Positions 293 through 31,333 of a stretch of DNA of 32,127 nt are shown piece after piece. The notes beneath the pieces were generated by a model, which saw nothing but the letters and a program-made list of their open reading frames with translations, searched no databases and was not told the DNA's origin. Source of the stretch: Hyphochytrium catenoides (taxonomy: Eukaryota; Protista; Hyphochytriomycota); NCBI GenBank assembly GCA_900088475.1, contig FLMG01004522.1:1-32127 (forward strand), in the 5' to 3' direction. Position 1 is the first letter of the stretch; the number at the start of each line of letters is the position of its first letter. A program made the position numbers and the translations under genes.

Positions 293-1927
293 TGGAGTGA
301 GAGGAGACAATCAGAGGATAGAAGAGTACTGGAGGTAGAGCTCCATCATAAAGGACGCCAAGATTCTCCTCCCTCTCTTTCTCCCTCGTTCAAAAATAAT
401 CGCTTACCATCGCTAGCTGTCCAATTGGTCTCTTCTATTCCAAGGAGACACTGGAGCTTCTTCAGCTGTGAAAAGAATCTAAAGCGGGCAGGCGAGAAGG
501 ACATAACGTGGTGCCGATAAAGGAAATGTGAATAGGTACAATGACAGAGTGAAAGTAGCCGGCCTCGAAGGAGACAGAGAGAGGAGACTTGCGGAGGAGA
601 GAGAGAGCTTCCTGGGCCACATCAATGAAAAAAGGAAATCTAACGGAGTGGAATTGGCTCTTTTAAGTTCCATAGACTAAAGCAAGGGGACAGTCCACGA
701 TAGGCTGTCCCAAGGAAAATGGATGCTGGATAGATGGAAGAAGAGAAGCAAAGCAGAAGTGGTAGCGGCATTCGGGAGAGAGCAACAGGAAAGAGAGAGG
801 GGCACGACGGAGGGAGAGAAGGGATCCCAGGACAAATGCCATAAGCGAGAGGTTGGGGTTTCTTACCCACTGTTAGGATGCGTGGCTGGATACCACTGAG
901 TTACATAGTTGAGACTGTCGAGAAAAGACCTAGGTAGCGAAAGAAGAGAGAGAGAGAGACGGTGAGAGAAGAGTGAGAGAAGGGTGCGGAGATAAATAGA
1001 CAGAAAGAGACAGACATCGAGAAGAAGCTAAGAAAAAAAGAGAGCGAAATAGACCAGCCATGTAGCATGGTAACCGGAACCGCAACCTTCTAATCTCTTC
1101 TCTTTCGTCTAATCTCCCTCGGTTTCTCTCTTTTCTCTCTTCTTTGCTACCTTTATCAACTCTGGAACTGAACCTTCCGCACCTGATGTTCTCTTCTCTC
1201 CCTTCTTCCCCCACTTACCACTTGAAATGAGCCATGAGGTACATGATGAGGCAGGCAGGCGCTCTGCTTTTCCCTCTCAAGGAGTGGATCAGACAGCGCT
1301 CTTCCTCTTTCTCCAGCTGAGAGATAAACTCTTGGATAATGGAGAGAGGGGAAAGGTCCTTCTCGTCGTACAGAGATTGCGAGGGATCGTCATCCCAATC
1401 CAACGTCAGATAGCTTTGGAAAGGATGCAAAGAGTGCATAATGACAGAGAGAAGCGATGGAAATTGGTCAAAGAGCAAGGAAAGGAAGGCCAGAGGGAGA
1501 AAAGAGACTTAGTGCTGATGATGTAAGTAGAGAGGAGATTGAAAAGTCCGAGAGCAATGGGCTTCCCACTTAGCAACCAGTACCGCTCTTTCTCTGCGTC
1601 TCTCTCTCTCTCATTTTGTCTCTCGATGTATCTGCCCTGTTTACTCTGTCTGTCTGTCTGTCTGCCTGTGTCTTTCTCTCTCTGTGCTCTGTCTCTCTTC
1701 CTCCTGTTGCTATCTCCCTGTCTCTTTCCCTCATGTCCTCACCCTTTCTTTCCCTTCTCAGGTTTGAGATCTCTCACTTACGTGACTCCTTCTTCCTCAA
1801 AGTTGTTAGGATATTCTTTAGGGCAGCAGTTTATGATGTGCGTGATCCGCTGCTCGCTGATAAACTCCCAGTCTTGTGCCACGTCAGCGTCTCCCAGAAA
1901 GAGAGACTCAGTTATTTTTGTCCCCAT
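1..1927 (-). CDS. Dual-specificity phosphatase (DSPc) family protein, likely a pseudophosphatase; 3'-truncated by the window edge
   Basis: Hand-spliced exons 1927-1782, 1413-1219, 929-867, 478-408 and 110-1, all with GT-AG borders and matching phases. They give MGTKITESLFLGDADVAQDWEFISEQRITHIINCC...VTYLTLDWDDDPSQ...CLIHSLRGKSRAPACLIMYLMAHFKWSFLDSLNYV...PNSGFFSQLKKL...EERVLQNTYWN. This matches the DSP motifs LFLG, ITHIINC, H-x-x-x-G-x-S-R, YLM and PN-x-GF-x-x-QL. The start codon is not certain. Confidence 0.9.
170..300. repeat. (AG)n compound microsatellite in a DSP intron
   Basis: Long GA/GACA run visible directly; it generates the spurious RERE ORF 56..520. Confidence 0.95.
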
Positions 1928-2072
1928 GATGCAGGAGGAGAGAGTGAGAGAAAAAGAGAGAAATATAGAAACAGACAAGCGATAGACGCTCGGCAGAGAG
2001 GCCAACCTACGTCCGAGATGCAGGAGATCTGGTTGAGCCGACGGATGAAACCCGATAGAGCGGTCTTCCAAG

Positions 2073-2105
<33 letters not shown>

Positions 2106-2903
2106 AAGAGAGGGAGAGAAAGAGAGAGAGATAAAGAGAAGAAAAACAGAGGGAGAAGGAGAGAGATGGCCACAACAAGTGGAAGGAGCAGGATGAGTCT
2201 GCCGGCTAATGTTCCAACATCCAGTCCATTGCGCTGTGCCAAGGACAGAAGCTCACTCAGCTCGACTTAGGGCCCCGCTAGCACTAAGAGATGAACCTTT
2301 ATTGGATCACTCGATCATTGCGCTCGTCTTGATCTGTCTGTCGTTGTTTAGCATGGCCTCTTTCTCTCTACTTTTCCTCTCCTTATGGCCCCATCCGCTC
2401 TCGTTGTCTTGCTCACCCAGTCCGCAAGGTCCAACCTTGTCCTTGTAACACTTCCACTCCTCCATTCCCCCTTGGACGGAACCACTTGCAAAGACTAATA
2501 TGTCCCCGCGTCCCAGAAGAGAAGCTAGGCCTAGGCCTTGTCAAACATTTTGGCTTCCATAGCAGCTTCCTCTTCGTTCGTGTCCTCGCCCGACCGCCTC
2601 CATGCCCATCCTCCGGGCAATCCTTCCCCATCCGCCTCCAGCCCACCACCACGCGCTGCCTATAGCGGGAAAGAGCTCGCAAGCTATCTTTCTGTTGCTC
2701 TCCATCATGCTTTCTATTTCCTTTGTATCTCTGCATGTTCTTCTTCTGGTTGGCCGTGAAGTTATCTTTTCTCATTTCTTCTGCCCTATTCTTTCTTACC
2801 CTCCTCTTTGTCCCTCTCTCTCTCTCCATATGGTTGTCTGACTCTGTACGGGTGTCTCTCTCCTAACTTACCTTTCCCCTGTAGTCCTCTCATGACACTT
2901 GAG

Positions 2904-4064: not shown

Positions 4065-5117
4065 TCACTCCCCATTGATCTGTCTGATCTCGCTCTGCCA
4101 GGCTTGATCGTGCTTCAAGATGTCAACAGGCACCCACCTCTTTCGCCCTCCCAGTTCTTCTTCCAGCACTTCTCTAATAAAGCAAGAGCGCCATGGTGCC
4201 ACTATTCCTCCGCTGCCTTGGTAGTAGAAAAGAAAGTCTTCATCTAAGAAGCGAGGAGGGACATCGTGGATCTCCACCGTCGGGCCACGATTCATCAGAA
4301 ACTCTGCATCTTTGACCTTCCACTTTCTACCAGGAGTCGGATCAAAAGGAGCTTTCCCGTCGGGCTCAGCACTGAAAATGGAAACGTTATCCCCGACCGC
4401 AGGATCTCCTACCGCTACCGTCTCGCCCTCACCAGTCTTTATCGGCTTTGGAGCACCGTACGTGACATTCTTTGCTGAGATAACAGCGCGAAAACCACAG
4501 GTTGCGTACTGGGCTGCGAGAGTCTTGATGACGGCCTTTGCAGACTCGCCCTTGAGCTCTACGTAGAAAAGGTCAGAGGGAAGTCTACCAGTACTTTCAT
4601 CTCGGAAGCGTTCGCCTTCACCTCCCTCCTCCACGTCCTTCGCGCCGATGGCGACCTTGATGGAAGGAGGAAGAGGACCGAAAGCCTTCTCAAAAGTGGA
4701 AAATAGACCTTGAGCGGACTTAGCAACGACTTCGAGGGAGTTGGTTGAAGACGAGCCGCAGCTGATCAGGGGAGCAGAAGTCGAGAGAGATCCAGTTTTC
4801 GTCTCTTCTTCCTCATAGACGTGGCACCGCTCCATAAGGAAGGCACAGCCTCCTTTGTACTCTCTCCCTCCTAGGAGCACCCAGCGAAAGGAGCGTAAGG
4901 GATAGTAAGGGTCAGCATGCTCTAAGTCGAGAAGGCCTTGAGAGGAGAGGACACCTCTCGCCCTCTCTTCATTCAGAGTCGTCCTGGCGCAAGGTGATAC
5001 TTTAGGCGTGTTGCTCGTGTTAGGAGGACCGCGCAGACGGACGGACTGGTCGCCGTTGACGCTTCCGGAGAGGACCAGGGGAAGAGCAAGGAGCATGATG
5101 GACAGTAAGGCTCTCAT
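4065..5117 (-). CDS. Secreted protein of unknown function, paralog A (350 aa, intronless)
   Basis: Uninterrupted 350-codon ORF with a signal-peptide-like N-terminus (MRALLSIMLLALPLVLSG). It is colinear with and highly similar to the ORF at 9013..10089, with many synonymous codon differences in identical peptide blocks, which supports coding status. Confidence 0.9.
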   Translation of the reverse strand: MRALLSIMLLALPLVLSGSVNGDQSVRLRGPPNTSNTPKVSPCARTTLNEERARGVLSSQGLLDLEHADPYYPLRSFRWVLLGGREYKGGCAFLMERCHVYEEEETKTGSLSTSAPLISCGSSSTNSLEVVAKSAQGLFSTFEKAFGPLPPSIKVAIGAKDVEEGGEGERFRDESTGRLPSDLFYVELKGESAKAVIKTLAAQYATCGFRAVISAKNVTYGAPKPIKTGEGETVAVGDPAVGDNVSIFSAEPDGKAPFDPTPGRKWKVKDAEFLMNRGPTVEIHDVPPRFLDEDFLFYYQGSGGIVAPWRSCFIREVLEEELGGRKRWVPVDILKHDQAWQSEIRQINGE

Positions 5118-7467
5118 TGTGATGTGCTATTGAGCTCGAAAGTTAGTGGATATTGGAGAATTCTGTTCTCTTCTTTTATCGTGGACCTGAGACGAAGGCC
5201 TCTTTGCTGGCTTATCCCGTCCGTAGTACTTCTGATGTTGACCGTTGAGCTAATAATGTGCTAGCTTGTGCTTCTTTATGAGTAAATTTGAGAATGAGCA
5301 GATGTAGCACAGAAGATACGATAACATCACTCTCCTAGTGCATGATCCAACACTGCATGTAAAAGACAGCCCTCCTACCATGACTTTGACAAGGGAAATA
5401 CGAAGGTAGCAGGGCCAAAGGCCAGGAAGAGGAAGGGAGATAGGAGGACCGTCCAGAGCTAGCTGGAGGGGGCTCGCTCTAGCGCCAATGATCACCTTAT
5501 CAGCCTGAAAAGCTTCTCCTAACGACAGGGACGATAATAAGGGAGATCGTAGTGTTTCCTCTCTCGCTTAGTCCATGATGATACTTTCCCTCTCTTCATA
5601 TGTTTGACTAGGACGCGGCGGTACGGTCATGACCCTGGTCGCCTTGGGTTTGAAAAGGTTACAGGTTACGACTGTAGGACGGCTAACAAAGCTATCAGAC
5701 TGACTGCAGACTACTAAAGAGTATAAGGAAGGAACAGCACGATGTAATTACCGCCAAACAGAGTTGACAGGCACAGCATTAAAGGCACAGAAAATGATCT
5801 GCCCTCCTTTTATGTGCCTTTCGCTGTATCTTCTTCAAGGTGCATCTCAAATCGTCTCCGTCGCAGAGGCATGAGCCTGCTGGTGACGGACGACGAGGAG
5901 AGGCGGGAACAGAAGAAGAGGCAGAACATGCGACAGAAAAGTATCAGATTATGAGGCGGTGATGGAGCAGTGACGAAGAAGCAGAACAGCGAATCTTCAT
6001 TGTGATCTTTCTTTGGTCTTTCCTTCTCATTGCGATGTGACCCAAGAGAGAGACATTTACTAAATACATCGACTCTTTCCAGAAAGGGGCAAAGAAGCCT
6101 GGGCCGTGGGGTGCCTTGCTCTCTCTCGATGGTGATGATGCAGTGTTCCAGGAATGATGCTGCAGGGTTGCATGAAGGTAAGACAGCAGCGTAGTACTGT
6201 AGAGCCAATGAATGAAGGCCTTCCTTGAACGATCTTCGGGGTTCTATTCCTCTCAGTTCTTTGAAAAAGGGTCTCTCCTACAGTATCAAGCAGGAGAGGA
6301 GGAAAGGGCCTCGAGGTATTTCCTTCTTCGTCCCTATCTTATCCGCAATTTTTGCCTCTTCTTCTCCCGCCCGTTTGGTCCTTGTAGACGCTAAAGGTTC
6401 CTACCGGTGAAGACAACCATCTCCCACCCAATCCAACCAAACCCGCATCCCTTTTGTCGCTTCAACATCATTGTCTCTACTACCTGTCAACCTCGAGCAA
6501 GAGAAGCGGTGGTTTCTCTGATCCAGTAGGAAGCTCGACAGGGTCCCTCTCTCCACCATCTTCTAGGCAATAAGAACGTATGGGGCCGATGTCACTGGAC
6601 TCTGCTTCTTCTTCGTCGTCTAACTCTCCTATCTTTTGTTCCTCGGACCGCCGCTCTCCCTGCAAAGCAATAAGAAGGTAGCCTCGCCCATCACTTGCAT
6701 CCTTGGACTAAGAAGAGGTCCATTCTTCTATAATTGACGTGCTTACACTGTTGGCCAATCAAACGACGAAGCTTGGTTGGCGGCAACAGCCAAGGGACAA
6801 GACAGTAAGCTTCTTGGTGGGTACAACATCAGGCACGCTGTTGCACCGCTTCAAGTCACTTAATTGATATTACCTCTTGAGGACGTTTTTCTGCTGCGTC
6901 ATGTTGTCAGCGAGGAGGAGGGATAAGGAAAGGCGGGTGACATGTGAGGAAGGTTTGATCGCACTAGGAATTTCTTGCTTCTTGCTCCTGGTGATGGGAT
7001 AGATGGTGGCATAGATTTTTCTTCATAGAATGATGGTAAGACCGAGACCAGTGGTGGAGGAACACAAGAATAGCGGAGAGTCAGAGAGAAGAAAGGAGGC
7101 AGGACCAATCGCTAACGGTTGGACAGACAAAGGCGTATGGTATGGGAGCAGCTTGGTTGGACAAATGAGAAGGAAGACTGCTGTGGCGGCGGCGGCATTG
7201 GCTGCTGCTCTTCTTGAGCTGTGGCGGCCACACAAAGGTTTACTTCGGATTTATTTATTGAGCTCTCTCCTATTTTTGTCTGCTTCTATAAGTTTTATGA
7301 TGATTTTGTATTGAGTATGGCAAGACTTCTTCATAGGCCACGCATTATAATGGTATATGTTTATTCATCTTTTGTAGATTTATTAGTATTTTTTATGCTA
7401 TTATTCTAGTGGGTTTGGGTGGACCAGAGGTGGGACGACAACAGACAGACCAGCTTGTGGGGCTTGC

Positions 7468-7600
7468 TCTCTCTCTCTCTCTTTCTCTNNNNNNNNNNNN
7501 NNNNNNNNNNNNNNNNNNNNNNNNNNNNNNNNNNNNNNNNNNNNNNNNNNNNNNNCTCTCTCTCTCTTTCTCTCTCTCTCTCTCACTCTCTCTCTTCGTC
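7468..7600. repeat. (CT)n microsatellite spanning assembly gap 7489-7555
   Basis: CT runs on both sides of the N-run. Confidence 0.9.
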
Positions 7601-7932
7601 TCTCTGCATGTATCCCCTCGCTCACAACTCTCAACGACCGGGCGATGAGTTCACTTCTCTTTCTCGAAGGATGGTTGTATGTCCAGGAGCTAGAAATAAT
7701 CGCCGAGCTGCTTGTCAAGCAACCAGGCCTCACCTGCACTTGAACCCTCCTAGAAGGCAAGCTGCTCTTCTCTCCGCCTTGCACTGCAGCTGATGTGGTT
7801 GCAAGCACCATTGATTGTTTATAACAATGCCGGCAAGTGCAAGAATCATGGAACAGGAAGGAGGTCTGTTCCTTGTTAGGGGTGCAGAACAAGTCGGGGA
7901 ATCCGATGCTTCTTTCTTGGTGGGCGGAGCTG

Positions 7933-7934
<2 letters not shown>

Positions 7935-7976
<42 letters not shown>

Positions 7977-8175
7977 TTCTTTCTCTCTCTCTCTCACAAT
8001 TTGACTGCTCAAAATATCCTTTCACTCGTGTCACGGCCTTTCTTCTTCCACTAGTTCCTTCTGCTTGATGTCCTACCTCTGGTCATATTTTTGTGATGAG
8101 CAGGATTCTTTTTACCTTTTTTCTCTGTTCTGTTCTTTCTCCCCTCTCTTCTCTCTTTTCTCTCTTTCGTCTCTC

Positions 8176-8221
<46 letters not shown>

Positions 8222-8225
8222 TTTC
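7935..8225. repeat. Two (CT)n-rich tracts (about 7935-7995 and 8120-8225)
   Basis: Visible directly in the sequence. Confidence 0.9.
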
Positions 8226-9012
8226 CCGTTTCTGTTCGTTGTTGGTTCGAGGAGGATTCTGTTCTTCTGTTGGCTCTACTCTTCTACTGACAACAGCCAA
8301 ATTTGGATTGGGGAACAGTGATCACGTCCCTGGTAAAGAGAGAACTCGGAGGCCAGTCGTTTACGTCTTGTCCGCTCGCCATGAAGAAGATTCTCTCCCA
8401 CTTGGTCACCCGTTGGTGTCTCCTCTCCGTCCACTCTCAGGGTGCACAAGGATGAGCGGGGGGAGGACAAGAGACAAAGCTCGGAGGAAGAAGAGAGAAT
8501 AGGAGGATAGAGGATGAGAGGTCCAGTGGAAGCTTGTCAACCGGTAGTTACACTCTCTTTCTGCCCTCTCCTCCTCCCAGTCAAAGGATTGACAATTGTG
8601 CGGGAGGCTAGTGGATCTCCGTCGTCCTCCGTTGCTGTGCTTCAAGATCAATCATCTCCTGTCAACCGTTATATCCCAAGCTGTAGGATGATTACGGTCC
8701 TCCAGGAGTGCGAGGGCAGCAGGGACGGAGAGAGAAAGAGAGAGAGAGGAGAGTAGAGAGAGAGGGGGAAAGGAGGGATGAGAGAGGAGTAAGCGAAGAA
8801 GAAGAGAGAGTCGAACCAAAGTGGCTAGCTGCACGTGAGCCTGGCACCAGTAGGTAGCTAGTTCTCACTCATAATAATTCCCTTTACTGATCAAGTCATA
8901 GACTTCAGAGCTCTTGAAGAGTTTCCTCTGAGCTAGGTCATAAGTTACAGCTTCCGATCTATCAACAACAGTTCGAGCAGCAAACTCATCACAGGAACAT
9001 CAGCACACAAAA

Positions 9013-10089
9013 ATGAGAGTACTTCTCTCCCTTGTTGCCGCCGTCTCTCTCATTTCCTCTCTCTTACCGATCAGCATTGCCCTTGAGGGACAACTGCTGC
9101 GTGGTCCCACAGCAAGCGGCGCGAAAGCTCCTTCCAAGAGTGCTACTACAGCGATAGGAAAATGCGGACGAACCCCAGAAAATGAGAGAGACGCTCGAGC
9201 GTTCCTCTCTTCTAAAGGCCTTCTCTCCTTAGAGCACAAGGATCCTTACTACCCAGCGAGATCCTTCCGCTGGGTACTCTTAGGGGGAAGAGAGTACAAG
9301 GGCGGGTGCGCCTTTGTTATTGAGCGCTGTCATCTCTATGATGGCTGGACAGAAGAGGGCTCGTCTTCCCCTACGCCACCACTGATTAGCTGTGGCTCTT
9401 TCTCATCTCAAGGCGTGGAGATCATTGCAAAATCTGCTGCCGGAACCTTTTCTTCCTTCGAGGATGCTTTCGGTCCTCTCCCTTCTTCCATTAAAGTCGC
9501 CATCGGAAGCAAAGACCTTGAAATGGATGATAAGGAAGGAGGGAAAGGGAAAAGTAAACTTCCGTCAGATTTATTCTACGTCGAGCTCAAGGGAGAGTCA
9601 GCAAAAGCCGCCATCAAGACTCTTGCAGCGCAATATGCAACCTGCGGGTTCCGCGCCGTAATCTCAGCCAAAAATGTCACCTATGGGTCGCCCAAGGAGA
9701 TACAGAGGAGCGACGGAGAGACAGAGATGGAAGGAGAGATTCCTTCAGGAAAGAATCCTACCATCCTCAGCGCTGAGCCGGATGGGAAAGCTCTCTTCGA
9801 TCCTACTCCTGGTAGGAAGTGGAAGGTCAAGGACGCAGAGTTTTTGATAAATCGAGGCCCATCGGTGGAGATCCACGACGTTCCAGCGCGCTTTCTGGAT
9901 GAAGACTTTCTCTTCTACTACCAGGGCAGCGCAGGGCGAGTGGCGCCCTGGCGGGCTTGTTTCATCAGAGAGGTGCTGGAGGAGAGGTCAGGGATGGGAC
10001 AAGGAGGGAATAGATGGCGTCCAATTGACATTGTTACCTATCATCAGCGGTGGAGTCAGGAGAGGAAGGTAGTGAATGGTGATAGGTAG
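9013..10089 (+). CDS. Secreted protein of unknown function, paralog B (358 aa, intronless)
   Basis: Uninterrupted ORF with a hydrophobic N-terminus (MRVLLSLVAAVSLISSLLPISIA). It shares the blocks RSFRWVLLGGREYKGGCAF, LPSDLFYVELKGESAKA, FDPTPGRKWKVKDAEFL and RFLDEDFLFYYQGS with paralog A. AATAAA lies downstream at 10178-10183. Confidence 0.9.
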   Translation: MRVLLSLVAAVSLISSLLPISIALEGQLLRGPTASGAKAPSKSATTAIGKCGRTPENERDARAFLSSKGLLSLEHKDPYYPARSFRWVLLGGREYKGGCAFVIERCHLYDGWTEEGSSSPTPPLISCGSFSSQGVEIIAKSAAGTFSSFEDAFGPLPSSIKVAIGSKDLEMDDKEGGKGKSKLPSDLFYVELKGESAKAAIKTLAAQYATCGFRAVISAKNVTYGSPKEIQRSDGETEMEGEIPSGKNPTILSAEPDGKALFDPTPGRKWKVKDAEFLINRGPSVEIHDVPARFLDEDFLFYYQGSAGRVAPWRACFIREVLEERSGMGQGGNRWRPIDIVTYHQRWSQERKVVNGDR

Positions 10090-10229: not shown

Positions 10230-11130
10230 CAGTGTAGAGTATCCTGGCGGTCGTCGCCTCTGGTCTGCGCTAACGTTCAACCTGCTATGCAATGTGTCCT
10301 TTCTGACTTTCTCCTAGCAGTGAAGGACATGTACAGAGTCTTCTTGCTTCAACAGCTTGCTCCTCTACATATCGCGCGGCACTTTATACACCTCTATCGC
10401 TTCCCGTCTGGCCGTCTCCAACGCCCCTTGAGTCCACTACTGCTCCTCTTGAATCTGTCGTTTACCTTCTCTGTCTTCTATATATTGAGTCATCTGCCGC
10501 CTCCTTCTTCGTGCCTCAACAGCCAAGAAAGCCCTCGCCCAGTGGCTTTGAGTCTCTAGCTCTCCTACTATCCGCTGTCACCTCACTGCCTCCACATTGC
10601 TGGCTGCTGGCTGCCAGCCTGGCCTTCATCCGCTTCCTCCTTCCTTGGGCCGGACAACAAGCGCGGCGAAGGGAGAAGATCGTGTCACCGGCGGCCTCTT
10701 CTAAGATCGTGTCACCGAGGCCCTCTTCTTCTTGGGCTTCTCCTTCCTTTATCCTTTCCTCTACTGTCTCTAGTTCTACAAACAGCTGAACGAGCTGCTG
10801 AACGCTTGCCAAGTCGTGCTCACCTGAAAAGCTCGTAAGTTCCCCTGTATTACCCCAGGACCTGGACTTGTCAAATCTCCCCCAGGAGCTATGTGAGCAG
10901 TGATCTCAAGGATGAAGCAGCAAAAGTGTTCATCCTTCCTTTCTCTGTCTCGTCCCAATCTCATTATTCTCTGTCTTGCCCCACTCTTCTACAATTATAT
11001 TGCGAACCCTGTACCTAGTCTCTTACCTTTTGTTCTATCTCGGTCTCTTCTGTCTTGAAGTCTCTTCTCAGCTCACTTTCGTTCTGATGCCACCTGTGCA
11101 GCAGCTCAGCGGCGGAGAGATCAGAGCGCT
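10230..11130 (-). pseudogene. Possible decayed gene for a charged, coiled-coil-like protein
   Basis: Protein-like E/R/Q-rich segments (ELLHRWHQNESELRRDFKTEETEIEQK followed by GTAAGA; LFVELETVEERIKEGEAQEEE; AVEARRRRRQMTQYIEDREGKRQIQEEQ) that I could not join without frameshifts or in-frame TAG stops. Confidence 0.25.
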
Positions 11131-29600: not shown

Positions 29601-31333
29601 GGTCATACATGTGTACGTTTAGCTGCTGATGCCGGTGGCCTTTATCGCTCATATCTTGGGCTGCTTCTGGTGGTACATCTCGTCGACGGAGAAGGACAGC
29701 TGGTGGACTCGCACGCTTGAAAGGTACCGAATGGAAGGTGCAACAGACAAAAACAGGTGAGAAGGACCGAGAGAAGGATTACCTTCGGATTGTGGAGCGC
29801 TTAAAACCCTTCAATGGCAGCTCAGCTTCTCTCACTCTCACTTTCGTTCTCCATTCTCTCTCTACTTTCCTTCTCTTGAGCGACCACTACCAGCTACGCA
29901 NNNNNNNNNNNNNNNNNNNNCACTTTAGCACTACATCCAAGTATATCGCTTCCCTCTACTGGTCTTTCACGACGATGACGACAGTGGGATATGGAGACAT
30001 CTACCCTGTCACCACGACAGAGCGAATCTATGCCACCATTGTCATGTTCATAGGAGGCAACGTCTTTGGTCTCCTGATTGGGAGTGTTGGATCTGGTAGA
30101 CCTTGTTCTCTTGCGTCTCTCTCGCCCATAACTCCCGCTTCTTTCAACGTATTGGTCTGGGGTTTCTAGGCAGCTCTGGTTCTCCTAATGCATTCTATAT
30201 CTACTTGCCTTGCGATCTCCCCTCATTGTATTCTGAGGCCTTGCACGAAGCTGACGGCACGTCTACAGCGATGCAGAGTATACAAGGCAGTAGCAGTCGA
30301 AGAGTGGAGCGGGTCCGCACATTGACTTCCTTCTTCGATCGTAAGAACTTTCATAAAGGGTTGCAGAAGGTGCTCGTCAACCAGGTAATCCCTGATCCCA
30401 TTGGTAGATAGAAGAGGGAACAGCCATTACGTCTGAGAATCAGAAAAGCGCCCTTTGTTGGCAGCCCAAAACAAGGAGTGAGAGAAGCGGCGAACGAGGG
30501 AAGACAAATCTGGAAAAGTGGAAGCTTGGGTCAGGAAGAGAAAAGTCAGAAGGGTAGGAAAAAGGCAGCATCACTCTCGATTGAAGGACAAGGATGGGGC
30601 CCAAGAGAGAGAGGAGAAGAGGTAGGAACCCAAGGGAGATGCTCATACCACTTGCTGTCCTCCCTCTCAGATGGACTTCTATTGGCAGAGAAAGAGTCCT
30701 TACAACGAGGAAGAGATCTGGAAAGCTCTTCCGCCCCACATCCTTCGTCCTCTACTTCTGCAGCTAGGAGCTCCTCTGATCAGTTCAGGAGTCAGAATAC
30801 TAGCGAATTCCTCTCCTGATCTGCTCTGCTTCCTGATCCAGCTCTTACAGCCTCAGTTCTTTGGACACCGGCAAGTCATCATTCGCAAAGGAGAGAGAAA
30901 CTCTAACATATATTTCTTGATGGGCGGAAAGGCGAAGGTAGACAGGGCAGAGGTGCTTGGCGATCCGTTTTCTCCCCTCAACGAGTCGCGGAGCGTCACC
31001 TCTAACCCCCCAAACACGGGACGTCAAAGTGTAAGCGAGAAGAAACCAGGGTCAGTGTCAGGGGAAGGCAATGAGTCTCTCCAAAGCATGGATGGAGACT
31101 GCTATCTTGCTGGTGATATGTTTGGCTGGCGCTCTGCAGTCTTTGAAAGGCCAGTCTCCGAGACTCTCATTGCCATTGGCTATTGCTCTACCTACGTCCT
31201 ACCCCGTTCTGCTATTATGTATGCGCAGAAGTACTTCCCGTTCCTAGCGAGAGAGCTGCACGGGACTTTAGCGGCGGCTATCCTTTCCACAGATATGGAG
31301 CACAAGGCCAGATCAAAGAGACAAGCTGTGTAG
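22560..31333 (+). CDS. Voltage-sensor/CNBD-family K+ channel (KCNH/HCN/CNGK-like) with two tandem 6TM+CNBD repeats
   Basis: Repeat 1 has IIDPRSPVKLKWDLLV (S1), DIVLNFMTGY, YLTSWFLLDLVSTIP (S3), LIRIARLIRFLKLLRLLKL (S4), WTVQTMMTVGYGEI (pore, 25811-25828), a C-linker and a CNBD. Repeat 2 has LLPSHTFKQVWDVVI, DIVISFRTAY, YLRSWFSIDIVSTIP, LRLVRLTRMFRVIKL, YWSFTTMTTVGYGDI (29981-29998), a C-linker and a CNBD. All junctions are phase-consistent GT-AG introns from ATG 22560 to TAG 31333. Confidence 0.92.
29901..29920. other. 20-nt assembly gap inside a channel coding exon (other gaps: 7489-7555, 20756-20823, 21499-21659)
   Basis: N-runs visible directly. This one nominally preserves the reading frame. 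Confidence 0.95.

Follow-up and report, generated by a model that had tools for sequence, protein, structure and literature searches.

Two divergent intronless genes of Hyphochytrium catenoides belong to a rare, undescribed protein family with bacterial-type relatives

In a 32,127-nucleotide stretch of Hyphochytrium catenoides contig FLMG01004522.1, analysed over its whole length and referred to here as the window, we found that two divergent genes, A and B, are genuine paralogs under selection and that they belong to a rare, never-described protein family. The explanation that we somewhat favour is an old transfer from a bacterium, followed by an inverted duplication, of a gene for what would be an extracellular, disulfide-bonded protein with a charged and aromatic pocket. 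A and B are the two longest open reading frames (ORFs) of the window, the third-longest having 224 residues, and they lie head-to-head with both reading frames intact, just as a first-pass annotation of the sequence had described them (Table 1). The two proteins share 62% identity in BLASTP (E 2e-160), and all six cysteines that had been singled out as positionally conserved align pairwise between A and B (43/51, 91/99, 98/106, 120/127, 207/211 and 312/316). At 119 of the 232 residues that are identical in the two copies the codons differ synonymously, and nucleotide identity is 46% at third codon positions and 85% at second positions. Nei-Gojobori estimates of nonsynonymous (dN) and synonymous (dS) substitutions per site were 0.23 and 1.96, giving a dN/dS of 0.12, a ratio that is approximate with dS near saturation and that is not near 1. 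Both genes are clearly under purifying selection, as the abundance of silent changes had been taken to mean, and with a dS of about 2 the duplication that produced them appears to be old. An NVT sequon is also common to both proteins (N217 in A, N221 in B). The KNVTY motif around it is indeed conserved, as had been noted, but its use as evidence of glycosylation does not hold: because this Asn belongs to the SAKN motif found family-wide, bacterial relatives included, its conservation reflects the fold.

The proteins had been said to match no known domain, and this was borne out in every curated collection consulted. No Pfam family was found for A or B at E values up to 1, and NCBIfam, PADLOC, PHROGs and PDB sequences gave no match to the pair, nor did the PDB and BFVD folds discussed below. 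A word-indexed protein search with a single protein gave no match, and the ESM Atlas gave no usable match for a window protein or for the metagenomic relative P0007. Because the claim of novelty rested on absence, we ran an exhaustive HMMER search with a profile made from A and B only, and this returned 80 relatives at E ≤1e-3 and 39 at E ≤1e-10 (best E 2.8e-28), that is, 80 clusters among 1.84 billion. When the family profile was used, the word-indexed search also gave at least one fungal match among the matches listed. The family is in consequence not confined to this lineage, since its 80 relatives are spread over bacteria, metagenomes and Blastocladiomycota. The source name of every one of them is 'hypothetical protein'. 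The relatives are homologous to the window pair over their full length, with 30-39% identity, and this homology takes in the succession F-D-P-T-x-x-R-x-W ... R-G-x-x-x-E-x-x-D ... D-x-D-F ... P-W, which is present in both A and B. In the family alignment (A2, 61 sequences), no Pfam family is common to the members, and the only assignment was Somatomedin_B on two fungal N-termini.

A pattern scan placed the family in Myxococcaceae (two metagenome-assembled genomes, MAGs) and in Oligoflexales (one MAG), and a profile search found it in 3 of the 401 genomes sampled from the phylum that holds Myxococcaceae and in 2 of the 131 from the phylum that holds Oligoflexales (5/532 in all). The bacterial copies lie amid ordinary bacterial genes, such as those for RNase J, UvrD, a sigma-54 activator, MatE, LysR and carbonic anhydrase. 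The Myxococcota paralogs are found at unlinked loci (two in genome G001, two in G265 and one in G002) and have almost no Cys and no signal peptide, in which they depart from nearly every other member. On one metagenome contig, the ORF that immediately follows a family member (L006:3905-4627, minus strand) showed a weak CBM9_2 match (E 1.2e-4), which is below the curated cut-off and is one case not seen at the other loci. Seven Blastocladiomycota carry the family, namely Blastocladiella emersonii, three Allomyces species, Sorochytrium, Paraphysoderma and Catenaria, so that all sampled blastoclad genera hold it, together with one hyphochytrid. In the fungal forms a membrane anchor at the N-terminus is accompanied by a Cys-rich stalk, which scores as Somatomedin B in Allomyces, and in the literature searched we found no naming of these fungal loci. 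The genome of H. catenoides holds exactly two copies, according to both single-protein and profile searches.

Judged from sequence comparison, identity, a shared loop indel and the tree agree in grouping the window pair with the bacterial-type 'long-loop' members and not with the fungi. The pair is 30-38% identical to bacterial-type members and 22-28% identical to the fungi. The loop between SAKN and PDGK spans 25-29 residues in the long-loop subgroup, 50 in the window pair and 15-17 in the fungi, and a one-residue insertion before a conserved Asp, present in 4 of 5 fungi, is absent in every other aligned sequence. The subgroup has 18 other members, including the Oligoflexales copy, and in eight of these there is a lipobox-like motif, built on a Cys other than the first conserved Cys of the family; if correctly called, such a motif is a bacterial trait. 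We built two quick trees. In the one with 79 rows, the window pair sits within a group of 22 rows that includes the Oligoflexales copy (support 84 in the Shimodaira-Hasegawa-like approximate likelihood ratio test, SH-aLRT). In the one with 43 rows, a branch with a support of 99 sets the fungi apart from the remaining rows, and the pair falls on the non-fungal side, the tree fixing the side and not the exact place. The gene was probably taken by an ancestor of the protist from a long-loop bacterium.

Several observations weigh against this origin. The deep branches of the trees are weakly supported and the window pair lies on a long branch; the lipoboxes were called by a crude pattern; and the cluster labels gave taxa for the fungi only, most relatives having no taxon label. 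Moreover, one clade uniting the window pair with the fungi was not rejected in an approximately unbiased (AU) test (log-likelihood difference 4.3, p 0.43). This last result is compatible with a different donor, either a Blastocladiomycota-like fungus that passed the gene to a pseudofungus or a single acquisition behind all the eukaryotic copies. Each of the seven named eukaryotic holders is a zoosporic fungus of similar lifestyle, and transfer of secreted proteins from fungi to oomycetes is documented (PMC4447370). We nevertheless regard such a donor as rather improbable, given that identity to the fungi is lower than to bacterial-type members, that the pair shows the long loop of bacterial type but neither the fungal insertion nor the membrane anchor nor the Somatomedin B (SMB) module, and that the branch with support of 99 parts the fungi from all others.

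A foreign origin followed by inverted duplication, which the first-pass annotation had put forward, remains the best reading, but two of the routes that it had offered find no support. The published genome of H. catenoides has scaffolds with genes of large DNA viruses (PMC5795050), which could point to a giant virus or another virus as the source of the pair. With no viral relative found in 2.9 million IMG/VR contigs, BFVD structures or PHROGs, and with flanks that hold ordinary intron-split host genes, we consider this source very improbable. Retroposition of a formerly intron-bearing host gene would explain why both copies are intronless in a genome where the average gene has 3.64 introns and the mean exon length is 228 bp (PMC5795050). 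A single exon of 1.05 kb is about 4.6 times this mean, so the absence of introns is unusual, not extraordinary. Retroposition has equally little to recommend it, as there are only two copies in the genome and no third, intron-bearing parent, the nearest relatives are bacterial-type, and the homology of the two copies ends inside the coding region, with no shared poly-A remnant seen. At the nucleotide level A and B are 73% identical over 797 nt, and their flanks share CT/GA repeats only. Under the favoured transfer from a bacterium, a long-loop gene would have entered the ancestor of the protist and gained a signal peptide of eukaryotic type, the base composition would have drifted to that of the host genome, and an inverted duplication would have followed long ago. 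The content of G and C by codon position in A and B is that of a neighbouring host exon, and therefore the genes are fully ameliorated.

Both N-termini have a short basic start followed by a hydrophobic h-region typical of signal peptides, called here by Kyte-Doolittle hydropathy (2.6-3.0 over 10 residues), in agreement with the signal peptides assigned to both proteins earlier. A signal peptide, a lipobox or a membrane anchor was detected in 40 of the 61 members by a crude hydropathy and pattern test. By this kind of prediction the family as a whole is exported or tethered to the surface, and it is predicted to be extracellular or surface-tethered in three kingdom-level groups. We propose an extracellular role because most members have export signals, the fungal forms are anchored at the surface and disulfides are predicted. 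The Myxococcaceae copies, which have neither signal peptides nor Cys, are an ill fit with a purely extracellular role, and this suggests a different location or export route for the copies in Myxococcota.

With the 61-sequence alignment, AlphaFold2 modelled the window protein with a mean predicted local distance difference test score (pLDDT) of 84.9 and a predicted template modelling score (pTM) of 0.79; this alignment was needed, a two-sequence alignment giving a pLDDT of 33. The N-terminal domain of B is a helix on an antiparallel sheet and is weakly cystatin/PepSY-like, and a test for internal duplication between the domains was negative. The most conserved block of B holds D263, R268, W270 and W313, which are invariant across the 61 sequences, and the near-invariant P264, T265, R281, G282, E286, D289, D296 and P312; these eight, as well as P157, Y189, K202 and G212, are conserved in at least 90% of the members. 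Three disulfides are predicted from the co-occurrence of cysteines. C211 and C316 are found together in 18 of 18 cases (p 8e-16) and C127 never occurs without C106 (p 5e-11), and with these two pairs taken the third would be C51-C99, which implies the set C51-C99, C106-C127 and C211-C316. The mature protein, exported by means of the signal peptide and held by the three disulfides, would then consist of the N-terminal helix-on-sheet domain and a more conserved C-terminal part, with an invariant D...R.W...W and a near-invariant cluster of K, R, E, D, D and Y.

The residues that are invariant or nearly so are for the most part charged or aromatic, with a clustering in the last 100 residues, a pattern that favours a pocket over a hydrophobic core. 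We tentatively propose that this cluster may be the candidate catalytic or substrate pocket of a hydrolase-type extracellular enzyme for external digestion, a reading that we prefer among the functions considered but put below even odds; such a function would fit the holders, since these are osmotrophs or predators. Four points weigh against it. No characterised member of the family was found, no gene neighbour is conserved across the five Myxococcota loci and the Oligoflexales locus, the conserved residues could be structural or calcium-binding instead, and a Foldseek search with the model gave no credible match in PDB (best E 0.27, TM-score ≤0.14) or in BFVD; both VIA searches were likewise without a credible match. 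A non-enzymatic protein, secreted or at the surface, which binds or inhibits a partner (for example a hydrolase) through its cystatin/PepSY-like N-terminal domain, appears to us the less likely of the two functions. Similarly doubtful, and bolder, is the idea that the C-terminal part forms a new extracellular catalytic fold, a putative hydrolase or lyase with an Asp/Glu/Arg/Trp site, shared by predatory bacteria, blastoclads and a hyphochytrid through at least two cross-kingdom transfers. If true, it would be a new enzyme class for external digestion or cell-wall attack. We do not claim a new fold for the C-terminal part, which was compared only within the whole-protein model.

Table 1. Position of the gene pair, its parts, the region between the two genes and the bacterial copies of the family.
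Feature	Position	Strand	Description
Gene A	4065..5117	minus	single-exon ORF, 350 aa including stop codon; member of undescribed family
Gene B	9013..10089	plus	single-exon ORF, 358 aa including stop codon; 62% identical paralog of A
Predicted signal peptide of A	5052..5117	minus	about residues 1-22, cleavage site approximate; hydrophobic h-region
Predicted signal peptide of B	9013..9084	plus	about residues 1-24, cleavage site approximate; h-region; model pLDDT low here
N-terminal alpha+beta domain of B	9154..9462	plus	residues 48-150; C51, C99, C106, C127
Conserved C-terminal part of B	9475..10047	plus	residues 155-345; C211-C316 pair (predicted); structural match not found
Loop expansion of B	9688..9762	plus	lineage-specific, about 22 residues, inside SAKN...PDGK 'long loop'; lower model confidence
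Most conserved block of B	9787..9951	plus	residues 259-313; conservation across 61 sequences
Conserved block in A	4191..4355	minus	residues 255-309
Divergent intergenic spacer	5118..9012		copies without homology here except CT/GA microsatellites
Assembly gap	7489..7555		inside (CT)n microsatellite, outside both genes
Myxococcota family loci	L003:7668-8507, L014:7941-8819, L004:4140-4988, L016:323-1564, L012:1483-2571		
Oligoflexales MAG family copy	L005:6802-7632		

That A and B are neighbours, face away from each other and are 3.9 kb apart rests on a scaffold join. The run of N in the spacer is bordered by (CT)n at both ends, and the starts of A and B are respectively 2.4 kb and 1.5 kb away from it; neither gene is interrupted, A lying whole to the left of the gap and B whole to its right, and the ORFs that appear to span it are translations of the microsatellite. 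The spacer is dense in (CT)n/(GA)n at 7460-8230 and 8700-8830, where spurious low-complexity ORFs of 120-200 aa are found on both strands, and one of these microsatellites is responsible for the gap. The flanks are eukaryotic on both sides of it, as shown by a DSPc exon to the left and an exon for cNMP binding to the right. The left one belongs to an intron-split dual-specificity-phosphatase-like gene (1215-2242, minus strand), whose exon 1215-1478 matches Pfam DSPc (E 1.8e-6). This exon reads I-H-S-L-R-G-K-S-R where the catalytic loop H-C-x-x-G-x-x-R is expected, and because Ser replaces Cys the product may be a STYX-like pseudophosphatase. In the right one, at 30671-31333, Pfam cNMP_binding identifies a domain that binds cyclic nucleotides (E 9e-8). 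A 27-nt unit is present in two tandem copies, 89% identical, some 0.6 kb downstream of B (10676-10729).

The favoured history is an event of a familiar kind, in which an intron-free gene of prokaryotic type for a secreted protein is gained by a fungus-like osmotroph and then duplicated, and what is unusual is the cargo. The family is rare, has no curated model and has a confidently predicted structure without a solved match. For structural and enzyme biologists it offers a compact target of about 300 residues with clear candidate pocket residues, and it would add a case to the study of how osmotrophic lifestyles are assembled by gene transfer. Until a function is assigned, it is one of many domains of unknown function.

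Among known systems, the closest in the eukaryotes are hypothetical proteins of Blastocladiomycota, namely AMAG_06867 of Allomyces macrogynus (a UniRef 'SMB domain-containing protein') and H9P43_009578 of Blastocladiella emersonii, which share the whole domain, the D/R/W/W set, the C211-C316 pair and an extracellular topology. They differ in having a type-II membrane anchor, a Cys-rich Somatomedin-B-like stalk, a short loop and the one-residue insertion, with only 22-28% identity to the pair. The bacterial long-loop members (the Oligoflexales copy and the metagenomic P0003-P0012) have the best identity, 30-39%, together with the same loop and Cys pattern and N-termini of the secreted or lipoprotein type, although they are shorter, at 250-300 aa, and have neither the loop expansion of about 22 residues nor the insert of 13 residues that the window pair carries between C106 and C127. 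The alpha+beta domains of cystatin, PepSY and fungalysin propeptides resemble the N-terminal domain (residues 48-150) in the placing of a helix on an antiparallel sheet and in being parts of secreted proteins. A likeness to the N-terminal D2/D3 domains of copper amine oxidase does not extend into the catalytic beta-sandwich with its topaquinone and His-copper site. Finally, the horizontally acquired, intron-poor secreted genes of pseudofungi (oomycetes and hyphochytrids) have in common with A and B a secreted product, the lack of introns, prokaryote-like relatives and duplication after transfer; whereas the documented pseudofungal transfers carry a recognisable enzyme family, the cargo of this pair is unnamed, lacks a model and gave no fold match.

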